From Macrostomum lignano (taxonomy: Eukaryota): a DNA stretch of 64,000 nt. Below, in pieces: positions 2,412-37,687 of the stretch. The stretch covers positions 55,368-119,367 of the forward strand of contig NIVC01003102.1 in NCBI GenBank assembly GCA_002269645.1, written 5' to 3'. The notes beneath the pieces were generated by a model. It did not search any database, had not been told where the DNA came from, and saw only the letters and a program-made list of their open reading frames with translations. A program made the translations under genes and the position numbers. The stretch's first letter is position 1; every line of letters begins with the position of its first letter.

Positions 2412-2780
2412 CAACGCAGACTCCGCTCTCCAGCCTGTAGCCGGAGTCGCAACGGCACTCGTAGCCGCCATTGAAGTTGAAGCAGGTTGAGTTGGCCAGG
2501 CCGGAGCAGATGCTGGAGTTCAGTTTGCACTCGTCAATGTCCTGACAGGAGCCGTCGCTAATTACCCGATCGAAGCCGCTGAGGCATTTGCACTCGTAGC
2601 TGCCCGGCTTGTTGTTGCACACGGAGTTCGCCGGGCAGGAGGCCTCGCCGTTGGAGCACTCGTCCTTGTCTAGGCAGACGCTGCCAGCTGGCAAATAGCC
2701 GTTGAAGCAGGAGCAGGTGTAGCTGCCGGCCGTATTCGTGCACGACTGGTTGCACGGGTTTGTCAGGCACTCGTCCACGT
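2412..2780 (-). CDS. Mucin exon 15, three Ca-binding EGFs
   Basis: DVDEC/DKDEC/DIDEC repeats with C.N..GSY.C.C; ends at a phase-1 GTGAGT donor. Confidence 0.92.
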
Positions 2781-35700: not shown

Positions 35701-37687
35701 TAGGCGCCAGTGGTGGTTGTAGTAGGCGCTTCAGTGGTGGTTGTAGTAGGCGCTTCAGTGGTGGTTGTAGTAGGCGCTTCAGTGGTGGTTGTAGTAGGCG
35801 CCGCAGTGGTGGTTGTAGTAGGCGCTTCAGTGGTGGTTGTAGTAGGCGCTTCAGTGGTGGTTGTAGTAGGCGCTTCAGTGGTGGTTGTAGTAGGCGCTTC
35901 AGTGGTGGTTGTAGTAGGCGCTTCAGTGGTGGTTGTAGTAGGCGCTTCAGTGGTGGTTGTAGTAGGCGCTTCAGTGGTGGTTGTAGTAGGCGCCGCAGTG
36001 GTGGTTGTAGTAGCGCCAGTGGTGGTTGTAGTAGGCGCTTCAGTGGTGGTTGTAGTAGGCGCTTCAGTGGTGGTTGTAGTAGGCGCTTCAGTGGTGGTTG
36101 TAGTAGGCGCTTCAGTGGTGGTTGTAGTAGGCGCCGCAGTGGTGGTTGTAGTAGGCGCTTCAGTGGTGGTTGTAGTAGGCGCTTCAGTGGTGGTTGTAGT
36201 AGGCGCTTCAGTGGTGGTTGTAGTAGGCGCTTCAGTGGTGGTTGTAGTAGGCGCTTCAGTGGTGGTTGTAGTAGGCGCTTCAGTGGTGGTTGTAGTAGGC
36301 GCTTCAGTGGTGGTTGTAGTAGGCGCTTCAGTGGTGGTTGTAGTAGGCGCTTCAGTGGTGGTTGTAGTAGGCGCTTCAGTGGTGGTTGTAGTAGGCGCTT
36401 CAGTGGTGCTTGTAGTAGGCGCTTCAGTGGTGGTTGTAGTAGGCGCTTCAGTGGTGGTTGTAGTAGGCGCTTCAGTGGTGGTTGTAGTAGGCGCTTCAGT
36501 GGTGGTTGTAGTAGGCGCTTCAGTGGTGGTTGTAGTAGGCGCTTCAGTGGTGGTTGTAGTAGGCGCTTCAGTGGTGGTTGTAGTAGGCGCCAGTGGTGTT
36601 GTAGTAGGCGCTTCAGTGGTGGTTGTAGTAGGCGCTTCAGTGGTGGTTGTAGTAGGCGCTTCAGTGGTGGTTGTAGTAGGCGCCGCAGTGGTGTTGTAGT
36701 AGGCGCTTCAGTGGTGGTTGTAGTAGGCGCCGCAGTGGTGGTTGTAGTAGGCGCTTCAGTGGTGGTTGTAGTAGGCGCCGCAGTGGTGGTTGTAGTAGGC
36801 GCTTCAGTGGTGGTTGTAGTAGGCGCTTCAGTGGTGGTTGTAGTAGGCGCTTCAGTGGTGGTTGTAGTAGGCGCTTCAGTGGTGGTTGTAGTAGGCGCTT
36901 CAGTGGTGGTTGTAGTAGGCGCTTCAGTGGTGGTTGTAGTAGGCGCTTCAGTGGTGGTTGTAGTTCAGTGGTGGTTGTAGTAGGCGCTTCAGTGGTGGTT
37001 GTAGTAGGCGCTTCAGTGGTGGTTGTAGTAGGCGCTTCAGTGGTGGTTGTAGTAGGCGCTTCAGTGGTGGTTGTAGTAGGCGCTTCAGTGGTGGTTGTAG
37101 TAGGCGCTTCAGTGGTGCTTGTAGTAGGCGCTTCAGTGGTGGTTGTAGTAGGCGCTTCAGTGGTGCTTGTAGTAGGCGCTTCAGTGGTGGTTGTAGTAGG
37201 CGCTTCAGTGGTGGTTGTAGTAGGCGCTTCAGTGGTGCTTGTAGTAGGCGCTTCAGTGGTGGTTGTAGTAGCTAAAATTATTCATGTTGGAGTGTTGGCA
37301 CTGGTTTTATATTGTGGAGTTAGTTCATCCAGTATTCGGTACGAGCTATATATGGTATATTTTTACTTACCAGCTTTAGAGGCTGTGACGAGAATAAGGA
37401 CTGGAAGTAGGTTTTGTGCATCGTCATTTAATAGTATTTATAAGCCAGAAATCTAATGCATGTACATGTAGCTCATCAGTCGAATGTGTGTAAAGTATTG
37501 AAACACTGTCCTTACCTGTGACCAGCGCTAGTAGCACGGATGGCGTCGCACTTCTCGGCAAGCTGCCAGGGCGGAACCGGACCGTGGCCTGAAGATTATG
37601 GAAGAATGAAAAAATATGAAAACGGAAGAAATGCAAAAGTAAAGTTGGAAATGATTAGCGAAACTTTACCGGTGCTAGTTTGCACAT
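2412..37687 (-). CDS. Giant MUC4-like mucin (Thr-rich repeats, TSP1, EGF x3, NIDO, AMOP-like, VWD, cadherin-like, EGFs); 3' end outside window
   Basis: 15 GT-AG exons with continuous phase: 37687-37670, 37588-37516, 37271-22293, 22211-22071, 21213-21070, 20904-20764, 20680-20550, 20447-20229, 19561-19409, 18549-17731, 16757-16290, 10928-10643, 8722-8427, 4581-4350, 2780-2412. Domain order matches MUC4-type mucins. No stop codon or TM segment reached in the window. Confidence 0.9.
2812..4270. repeat. 36-bp minisatellite (gtgacggaagtttccattacaatagagagagatgca), ~40 copies
   Basis: Fills mucin intron 14; 32-bp variants lack GAGA. Confidence 0.97.
4350..4581 (-). CDS. Mucin exon 14, two EGF-like modules
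   Basis: NGAAC...[24 protein letters not shown]...[16 protein letters not shown]. Confidence 0.9.
4635..6585. repeat. 21-bp minisatellite (gtgtcagatcccaaaccctaa), ~90 copies
   Basis: Mucin intron 13; one CCCTAA per unit. Confidence 0.97.
7662..8370. repeat. 20-bp minisatellite (cacagacacaattagatacc), ~35 copies
   Basis: Mucin intron 13, next to the donor. Confidence 0.95.
8427..8722 (-). CDS. Mucin exon 13, cadherin-like/Ig-fold module
   Basis: NVAPAF...VSDKNDDPF...APAWLS...SWTP...CQCK; phase 1-0. Confidence 0.85.
8765..10625. repeat. Polypyrimidine/polypurine 14-bp repeat (ctctctccttctcc)
   Basis: Almost entirely C/T on the plus strand; mucin intron 12. Confidence 0.97.
10643..10928 (-). 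CDS. Mucin exon 12, post-VWD Cys-rich segment
   Basis: AWMIDCSQ...[18 protein letters not shown]; several N-X-S/T sites. Confidence 0.88.
10957..16282. repeat. (TAAC)n microsatellite, ~5.3 kb, with TATC/TGAC/CAAC interruptions
   Basis: Fills nearly all of mucin intron 11. Confidence 0.98.
16290..16757 (-). CDS. Mucin exon 11, VWD domain
   Basis: Ends with [16 protein letters not shown], the [13 protein letters not shown] motif. Confidence 0.9.
16835..17575. repeat. G-rich 15-bp repeat (gggatcagggattaa) with a 97-bp higher-order unit
   Basis: gggatcgctg recurs at 16951, 17048, 17145, 17242 and 17339. Confidence 0.93.
17731..18549 (-). CDS. Mucin exon 10: end of NIDO, AMOP-like Cys-rich domain, start of VWD (YGDPH)
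   Basis: TCP...CF...VCCY...ACQ...[14 protein letters not shown]-like pattern; [22 protein letters not shown] is a typical VWD start (GDPH at 17794-17805). Confidence 0.9.
18575..18842. repeat. Degenerate 11-bp repeat (atgcggttgct)
   Basis: Mucin intron 9. Confidence 0.85.
19409..20680 (-). CDS. Mucin exons 7-9 (20680-20550, 20447-20229, 19561-19409), NIDO-like domain
   Basis: [23 protein letters not shown]...IVAAFWS resembles the NIDO FPF...YVSTNG.ISF...IAPFW pattern; phases are continuous. Confidence 0.75.
19597..20145. repeat. 40-bp minisatellite (ctgactgataagagcacctggctttattgggacacacctg), ~13 copies
   Basis: Exact 40-bp period (19621, 19661, 19701...); no spacers. Confidence 0.97.
20764..20904 (-). 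CDS. Mucin exon 6, Ca-binding EGF
   Basis: [32 protein letters not shown]; phase 1-1. Confidence 0.9.
20945..21055. repeat. Incipient 15-bp repeat (agaagccaaaccttg), ~5-6 copies
   Basis: Inside the 165-bp mucin intron 5. Confidence 0.75.
21070..21213 (-). CDS. Mucin exon 5, Ca-binding EGF
   Basis: [12 protein letters not shown]...[16 protein letters not shown]...CV; phase 1-1. Confidence 0.9.
21335..22070. repeat. (TAAC)n followed by (TCAC)n/(TCCC) microsatellites
   Basis: Mucin intron 4; the (TCAC)n block abuts the donor. Confidence 0.95.
22071..22211 (-). CDS. Mucin exon 4, EGF-like
   Basis: [34 protein letters not shown]...PCE; phase 1-1. Confidence 0.9.
22293..37271 (-). CDS. Mucin exon 3: ~14,979-bp exon of TTTTTEAP then TTTTDG(A/S)/TTTTAGA repeats, ending in a TSP1 repeat
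   Basis: TTTTAG acceptor at 37272-3; 24-bp and 21-bp coding repeats; C-terminal [14 protein letters not shown]...RRRQC TSR motif; GTACG donor. More than 20 small deletions break the frame between ~27945 and ~36965. Confidence 0.85.
37516..37588 (-). CDS. Mucin exon 2 (signal-peptide-like ...PSVLLALVT)
   Basis: TCTTCAG acceptor and GTAAG donor; the phase-1 end joins exon 3 to give VTA-TTTTEAP. Hydrophobic core is short. Confidence 0.75.
37670..37687 (-). CDS. Mucin exon 1 (MCKLAP)
   Basis: ATG at 37687 with an upstream in-frame TAG; donor GTAAAG; in frame with exon 2 across an 81-bp intron. Confidence 0.65.

Follow-up and report, generated by a model that had tools for sequence, protein, structure and literature searches.

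A probable gene for a giant threonine-rich mucin of the MUC4/'mucin-like protein' family in the flatworm Macrostomum lignano

In 2016 an N-terminal TSP1 was described in coral mucin4-like skeletal proteins, an architecture held at the time to be unique to corals (PMC4890752), and sea anemone mucin4-like proteins with extra domains have been catalogued (PMC9080433). Autocatalytic cleavage at a GDPH motif has been shown for MUC2, MUC5AC and FCGBP (PMC8267560) and is proposed for MUC4 (PMC8660890). The flatworm Macrostomum lignano secretes very large adhesive proteins, Mlig-ap1 and Mlig-ap2, which combine KR-rich regions, C-type lectin, VWD-C8-TIL and LDLa domains with repeats of 255 aa and 221 aa (PMC6410801). 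Our literature searches found no described Macrostomum or planarian NIDO/AMOP mucin. Here we analysed a 64-kb window of the M. lignano genome (positions 55,368 to 119,367 of contig NIVC01003102.1, assembly GCA_002269645.1; by the window we mean this whole stretch of 64,000 nucleotides). It probably holds, at 2412-37687, a gene for a giant threonine-rich mucin of the MUC4/'mucin-like protein' family, for which we infer cleavage at GDPH and tethering to the membrane, and whose frameshifts are likely artefacts.

Reading the splice sites exon by exon, we followed the gene on the minus strand from an ATG at 37687 to the last visible donor, a GTGAGT just past 2412. The 16 exons have GT-AG borders on every one and keep the frame throughout, so some 6,170 codons fall inside the window, and the 12 exons 3' of the giant exon 4 contribute 1,140 non-repeat codons without a stop. 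An earlier inspection of the letters by a model, the sequence-only reading, had drawn these bounds on this strand and had proposed a signal-like N-terminus, three EGF modules ahead of NIDO and an invertebrate origin, all of which hold up in the rebuilt gene. Its features are as follows.

37811-37850, minus strand: candidate core promoter, putative and read from the sequence, with CCAAT at about 37850 and TATAAG at 37816-37811 (TATAAG about 129 nt 5' of the ATG, the two together spanning about 130-160 nt upstream)
37670-37687, minus strand: exon 1, the ATG and five codons, then a GTAAAG donor
37516-37588, minus strand: exon 2, basic n-region of the putative signal peptide and the beginning of its hydrophobic core
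37371-37400, minus strand: exon 3, remaining hydrophobic core and a cleavage-like site ending ASKA
22293-37271, minus strand: exon 4 (14,979 nt), mucin (PTS) repeats, then a TSR-like module
25169-37271, minus strand: 24-nt array, 507 copies, 96% matches, encoding TTTTTEAP and TTTTTAAP
22523-25158, minus strand: 21-nt array, 126 copies, 83% matches, encoding TTTT[D/A]G[A/S]
22293-22491, minus strand: TSR-like module, with a sub-threshold TSP_1 match and an amphioxus alignment
22071-22211, minus strand: exon 5, EGF-like module, with the same junctions in A0A1I8ISB7
21070-21213, minus strand: exon 6, calcium-binding EGF (cbEGF)
20764-20904, minus strand: exon 7, cbEGF
19409-20680, minus strand: exons 7b (20550-20680), 8 (20229-20447) and 9 (19409-19561), N-terminal and central parts of NIDO
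17731-18549, minus strand: exon 10, end of NIDO, AMOP-like region (18252-17818), GDPH (17805-17794) and start of VWD
16290-16778, minus strand: exon 11, VWD core, free of cysteine
10643-10928, minus strand: exon 12, end of VWD and C8-3_MUC4 domain
8427-8722, minus strand: exon 13, Ig-like/cadherin-like beta-sandwich (He_PIG, Big_9 type) with several sequons
4350-4581, minus strand: exon 14, two EGF-like modules
2412-2780, minus strand: exon 15, three cbEGF modules, with the GTGAGT donor at its end

The product of exons 1-3 (18, 73 and 30 nt) is a plausible signal peptide, a run of 40 residues joined to ATTTT, and the 121 nt that the three exons add up to agree in phase with the Thr frame in which the first block of exon 4 is read. 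For exon 11 an alternative in-frame acceptor lies at about 16757, 21 nt downstream, with a better pyrimidine tract; we rejected it because the VWD loop would then be shorter than in close relatives. Protein models from the same species bear on the remaining junctions. UniProt A0A1I8ISB7 (505 aa, M. lignano) is about 99% identical from the 3' end of exon 4 to exon 9 and has the same splice junctions between these exons, while A0A1I8HAK0, A0A1I8FQR3 and one UniParc entry cover other parts of the gene, some with frameshifted stretches. M. lignano proteins are the only near matches in the databases, and these models lend independent support to most of the exon structure. Inspection of 1-2380 by eye and a tblastn search with ten relatives revealed no further exon there.

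Several of the domains behind the repeats clear their Pfam cut-offs: EGF_CA and cEGF, VWD with 39.9 bits (cut-off 22.9) and C8-3_MUC4 (PF23263) with 44 bits (cut-off 25), the last a domain that the sequence-only reading had not listed. VWD does open with the GDPH motif claimed for it, which is kept in 16 of the 17 relatives compared and at which the VWD domains of FCGBP and MUC2 in the PDB align. A sequence search of the PDB returned generic VWD relatives only (FCGBP, MUC2, VWF) and no solved NIDO-AMOP-VWD protein. The first cysteine after GDPH comes 193 residues on. Sequons of the N-X-S/T type, predicted to be plentiful after GDPH, number 19 in that part against 7.2 +/- 2.4 expected from shuffles, and the enrichment is found only there (before GDPH, 7 against 5.3). 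The prediction of at least five EGF modules after a cadherin-like domain agrees with the two EGF modules of exon 14 and the three cbEGF modules of exon 15. That domain, exon 13, has no Pfam match of its own. Modelled by AlphaFold with nine relatives, it is nevertheless predicted to fold as an eight-strand beta-sandwich (pLDDT 84.7, pTM 0.74), for which the best PDB matches by Foldseek are Rib, SrpA, desmocollin and NCAM Ig-like domains (TM-scores 0.57-0.73); its counterparts in the relatives match Big_9 (7/9), He_PIG (5/9) and Cadherin_5 (2/9) in Pfam. "Cadherin-like" is thus a fair description of what the model suggests to be an Ig-like beta-sandwich.

Two further modules stand at or below the Pfam cut-offs. 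NIDO reaches 26.0 bits when scanned alone but 22.1 bits in the whole protein (cut-off 25), and is collinear with the strong NIDO of relatives, such as the 87.5 bits of the amphioxus protein CAH1237975.1 (P0017). The TSR-like module scores 17.7 bits against the TSP_1 cut-off of 21.6, with positions 7-27 of the 49 in the profile covered; it keeps CSATCG and the Arg cluster RRR, with the Trp layer down to one W, and it aligns residue by residue with the TSP_1 of CAH1237975.1 (50.8 bits). Both domains, as proposed, can therefore be traced through relatives, although their own scores are borderline for NIDO and insufficient for TSP_1.

The AMOP domain required a different approach. Pfam AMOP finds no match in the protein even at E <= 10, and with a seed profile from five true AMOP domains the score is only 7.6 bits, in the correct register. 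The corresponding region of the relatives has a common pattern, W...CPC...A.D.R, C.VR, G..CCY and CC...C..Y..RP, which is recognisable as that of AMOP. When the region was aligned together with 17 relatives and compared by hhalign with ten true AMOP domains, the probability was 98.5%, with an E-value of 2.7e-15 over 119 columns. Because of this profile-profile match and the shared cysteine pattern, the region between NIDO and VWD appears to be a divergent AMOP; the label "AMOP-like" is supported by homology through relatives and fails as a direct Pfam call. Of the three domain profiles on which the sequence-only reading had staked itself, then, VWD is called, NIDO sits at its cut-off, and AMOP is missed, as it also is in shark and amphibian mucin-4 relatives.

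To place the protein among its relatives we used exon 10, with which a word-indexed protein search retrieved three M. lignano-type fragments only. An exhaustive HMMER search with this exon alone gave 75 relatives, of two kinds. Those of the SUSD2 type, whose AMOP is canonical (100-170 bits), align with no more than the C-terminal half of the AMOP-like region. The larger group aligns over the whole of exon 10, with NIDO, a gap region of 150-170 aa, VWD and C8-3_MUC4 and with no Pfam AMOP; it takes in sea-star and oyster 'mucin-like protein', amphioxus proteins, Pleurodeles 'mucin-4-like' and Callorhinchus 'mucin-4'. Among the MUC4-like relatives sampled (P0007-P0012, P0016, P0017, P0027 and P0038, including Callorhinchus 'mucin-4'), Pfam AMOP (PF03782) has no match at E <= 0.001. 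Vertebrate mucin-4 and mucin-4-like, echinoderm, mollusc, brachiopod, annelid and amphioxus proteins are collinear with the flatworm protein and score 160-250 bits, against 57-91 bits for the SUSD2 type, and the part after GDPH is collinear with Callorhinchus mucin-4 (189 bits) and Pleurodeles mucin-4-like (228 bits), as the protein is with amphioxus CAH1237975.1 (239 bits). Together with the succession of NIDO, AMOP-like region, VWD-GDPH, C8-3_MUC4 and EGF modules, these scores bear out the proposed MUC4-type membership, which, being drawn from a ranking of scores, is a claim about the family and not about orthology to MUC4 proper. The top match to exon 10 in the exhaustive search was P0004 (7,101 aa), an unusual multi-GDPH membrane protein with one hydrophobic segment, at the C-terminus; it has ten tandem AMOP-VWD-C8-3 units, in each of which a GDPH recurs at intervals of ~700 aa. 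By phmmer it is not matched by the AMOP-like region alone, and its score stems mainly from the start of VWD.

The comparison with individual systems sharpens this placement. With vertebrate MUC4 (Callorhinchus milii XP_042195169.1; Pleurodeles XP_069068933.1) the flatworm protein shares NIDO, VWD-GDPH, C8-3_MUC4 and EGF modules, as well as a putative AMOP-type linker, a conceptual N-terminal PTS domain in a giant exon and, after GDPH, a part predicted to be rich in N-glycans; both are missed by Pfam AMOP. Unlike vertebrate MUC4 it has a TSR-like module and three EGF modules between PTS and NIDO, and it carries cbEGF modules where mammalian MUC4 is described with two to three plain EGFs. Proteins of the SUSD2/Drosophila Mesh type (Lingula XP_013418585.1, Branchiostoma CAH1258735.1) also have AMOP, VWD-GDPH, C8-3_MUC4 and in some cases NIDO, but their AMOP is canonical, they add TIG and Sushi, and they are without a PTS domain or a cbEGF array. 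Assignment of the flatworm protein to this type was rejected, as it has no AMOP, Sushi or TIG match and a much lower similarity.

A matching layout is that of Branchiostoma lanceolatum CAH1237975.1 (automatically named 'FBN3', 2,139 aa), which over about 1,150 residues has the same order of TSP_1, EGF, two cbEGF, NIDO, AMOP-like region, VWD, C8-3_MUC4, Ig-like domain and cbEGF array, with a transmembrane segment at 1799-1826. It differs in that its PTS domain is short (about 230 aa) and juxtamembrane, where that of the flatworm is giant and N-terminal; it has GEPH in place of GDPH, and the identity between the two proteins is about 26%. The sequence-only reading had taken the TSP1-EGF block for an insert added in this gene. 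Since CAH1237975.1 is collinear from its significant TSP_1 to its transmembrane segment, this idea has to be given up, and the coral proteins of 2016 were already a precedent. The coral protein (mucin4-like skeletal organic matrix protein, or Acropora mucin-like protein) has TSP1 N-terminal to NIDO-AMOP-VWD-EGF, where the flatworm protein has its TSR-like module, and is classed as transmembrane (PMC4890752). By their published description, the coral proteins differ in having repeated TSP1, in coming from the skeleton and in that no giant PTS exon is reported for them (PMC4890752). The combination of TSP1 with a mucin4-type layout is thus seen also in the amphioxus protein and, in degenerate form, in the flatworm gene, which suggests that the architecture is not confined to corals. 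What stands out as particular to the flatworm gene is the size of its PTS domain and its N-terminal position.

That domain fills most of exon 4. Read conceptually in the Thr frame, the repeats of the giant exon encode 4,917 aa, of which 59.7% are Thr, 14% Ala, 10.5% Pro and 8.3% Glu. Exact copies of TTTTTEAP (375) and TTTTTAAP (65) are followed by TTTT[D/A]G[A/S], and the repeat domain has some 2,900 Thr in total and one Glu per 8 residues, with no Lys or Arg. The arrays were called by Tandem Repeats Finder. The claim of about 4,900 aa of about 60% Thr in a single exon thus stands in concept but the frame is not intact, and the claimed product of more than 6,000 aa is not what the assembled sequence encodes. 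Read literally from the ATG, the sequence gives 98 repeat codons, then slips to LKRLLQPP and meets a stop at codon 244 (position 36663). Between 37271 and 27950, the 5' 9.3 kb of the giant exon, the Thr frame switches about 19 times at about 21 units of wrong length. Of these, 12-13 are an identical 22-nt unit reading ...ACTG--GCGCC..., while others are 23, 41, 47 or 70 nt long and fall short by 1, 2 or 7 nt. A single Thr frame extends from 27950 through 5.4 kb of repeat and the TSR to the donor of exon 4; the 21-nt array within this stretch is more diverged, yet all its length changes are multiples of 3. The longest intact open reading frame is 29361-22246 (2,372 codons). The length of exon 4 is divisible by 3, and the frame of its last block is that of its first and agrees with the phase handed on by exons 1-3. 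After each 22-nt unit the +1 frame is an open basic repeat, LLQPPLKR, which explains why some frameshifted stretches stay open; the third frame has a stop in every Glu-type unit (*SAYYNHH).

How such a protein might work can be sketched from its relatives. It would enter the secretory pathway, and its repeats would be densely O-glycosylated in the Golgi, giving an extended polyanionic bottle-brush on the order of one micrometre long. Early in the pathway the Asp-Pro bond of GDPH would cleave autocatalytically. In MUC4 the two subunits are held together by their shared fold alone. Here, too, the alpha part (PTS, TSR, EGF, NIDO and AMOP) would stay bound non-covalently to the beta part through the shared VWD fold, because the VWD core, cysteine-free for 193 residues, offers no disulfide across the cut. 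The beta part would comprise the heavily N-glycosylated VWD, C8-3, Ig-like and EGF domains and, by analogy with full-length relatives, end in one transmembrane helix whose coding sequence lies outside the window. The resulting mucin would probably act at the cell surface, in the glycocalyx, in lubrication or as a barrier, and could shed its outer subunit; its place in the organism, whether as an epidermal or gut glycocalyx, for lubrication or as a barrier, is a guess.

Several points weigh against an intact, membrane-bound mucin. Pfam calls neither AMOP nor TSP_1 in the flatworm protein, and the CPC and CC motifs of its AMOP-like region are lost, each being short of one Cys. Beyond codon 244 the ATG frame meets 81 more stops, net conservation of frame has by itself a chance of 1 in 3, and the identical 22-nt units recur, partly in similar local patterns. 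These units could equally be real and have spread by unequal crossing-over, which predicts just such a set of 21 frameshifting units, many identical and in partly repeated contexts. Among several near-identical copies of the gene, in a genome that is partly duplicated, this one would then be a young pseudogene or a defective allele, making a secreted Thr-rich peptide of at most 243 aa or nothing, while a sister copy is functional. There are several distinct M. lignano models of the gene family (P0001, P0002, P0003, P0005 and P0076), and with several near-identical copies a defective one could be tolerated. We nevertheless regard real frameshifts as rather unlikely, since all 12 downstream exons are intact and without decay, with conserved cysteines and good splice sites, and the indels are limited to the part of the array where reads cannot be placed uniquely: they reach 2.3 per kb in its near-identical part, against none in the more diverged, variant-rich 5.4 kb of repeat and none in 3.5 kb of other exons. 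The recurrent unit, moreover, reads G--GCG exactly where GAAGCG (Glu-Ala) and GCGGCG (Ala-Ala) units differ, as an artefact at this variable E/A (GAA vs GCG) dinucleotide would; a consensus caller faced with a mixed pile-up may yield a 22-nt unit lacking the two variable bases. Because the indels sit only where runs of identical units prevent unique placement of reads, we favour consensus errors of the assembly as their likely source, the real gene then being intact. That the Thr array could be a non-coding minisatellite in an intron or upstream region, with the protein starting near TSR, has to be considered, given that tandem arrays crowd the introns across the window, several of these arrays having a period divisible by 3, and that the composition of the array leaves all three frames nearly stop-free, for which reason the length of an open reading frame is no evidence of coding. 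This is highly improbable: the Thr frame runs unbroken, and with no acceptor site, from 27950 into TSR and its donor, the diverged array changes length by whole codons only, the signal-peptide exons 1-3 are in matching phase, two independent M. lignano models (P0005 and P0076) start inside the array in the Thr frame and run on into TSR, and the composition is that of a textbook PTS domain.

For the intact gene that we favour, what has to be weighed next is whether its product is anchored. The gene runs past the left edge of the window, so that its 3' end, any transmembrane segment and the stop are not visible, which is a further point against tethering; besides, 5 of the 17 relatives are without a hydrophobic C-terminal segment, and M. 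lignano secretes very large VWD/EGF/TSP1 proteins for adhesion (PMC6410801). The product may on these grounds be a secreted matrix or adhesive mucin without a membrane anchor, for instance part of mucus or of a gland secretion. We consider this unlikely. The relatives that lack the segment are mostly short or fragmentary models, and 12 of 17, including all clearly full-length ones and the collinear amphioxus protein, have one such segment. Mlig-ap1 and Mlig-ap2 come, like the mucin, from M. lignano and are very large secreted proteins with VWD, EGF or TSP1 modules and O-glycans (PMC6410801), but their architecture and repeats are unlike those of the mucin, being without NIDO, AMOP, C8-3 or an 8-aa Thr repeat, and identity with either was rejected on this basis. 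A bolder proposal, which we regard as a long shot, is that the polyanionic and probably tethered mucin could be a main component of the negative epidermal or anchor-cell glycocalyx of Macrostomum, the surface that serves as partner of the polycationic Mlig-ap1 in the published adhesion model, with force-sensitive separation at the cleaved GDPH allowing the outer subunit to be shed.

The window as a whole has eukaryotic sequence in which tandem repeats abound. Exons 11 and 12 are separated by an intron that consists largely of a 5.3-kb (CTAA)n microsatellite (10957-16289; 1,333 copies, 95% matches), and nearly every intron has a minisatellite of its own (1035-2337, 2826-4270, 4750-6584, 7663-8367, 8791-10564, 16833-17575 and 19604-20147, with periods of 19, 36, 21, 20, 14, 15/97 and 40 nt), several of them giving long spurious open reading frames on both strands. 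Upstream, at 41637-46006 on the minus strand, lies a cytoplasmic tyrosine kinase gene of CSK- or Src-like layout, with exons for SH2 and a sub-threshold SH3 (44910-45299) and for the kinase domain (43204-43890 and 41637-42059); a 24-nt array of 25 copies in its region (42224-42819), reading PNATCTSD on the minus strand, is probably intronic. On the plus strand, two exons at 58161-59377 encode a methionine-R-sulfoxide reductase B (SelR, 50 and 100 bits). A 21-nt array at 61472-62968 (71 copies, 93% matches) can be read through in several frames and on either strand, for example as CSGEADS repeats (minus) and ESASPLH repeats (plus). Scans of the whole window for tRNA and Rfam families gave no matches.

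In conclusion, the gene is a further member of a known animal protein family, near-identical fragments of which from M. lignano are already in UniProt, and it leaves our knowledge of how MUC4-type proteins work unchanged. It does provide the first near-complete gene model of a flatworm MUC4-family mucin, UniProt holding for M. lignano only fragments of 444-514 aa. Since Pfam AMOP misses the sampled MUC4-like clade, any census that demands NIDO, AMOP and VWD in combination will count too few such proteins, and frameshifts clustered where a coding minisatellite is most homogeneous are a warning sign for the annotation of mucins in repeat-rich genomes. Finally, the presence of an N-terminal TSP1/EGF block on a MUC4-type core in flatworm, amphioxus and corals argues that this arrangement is old and no lineage-specific invention; if this is true, the TSP1-EGF-NIDO-AMOP-VWD layout, which was published as specific to corals, would be ancient among animals.

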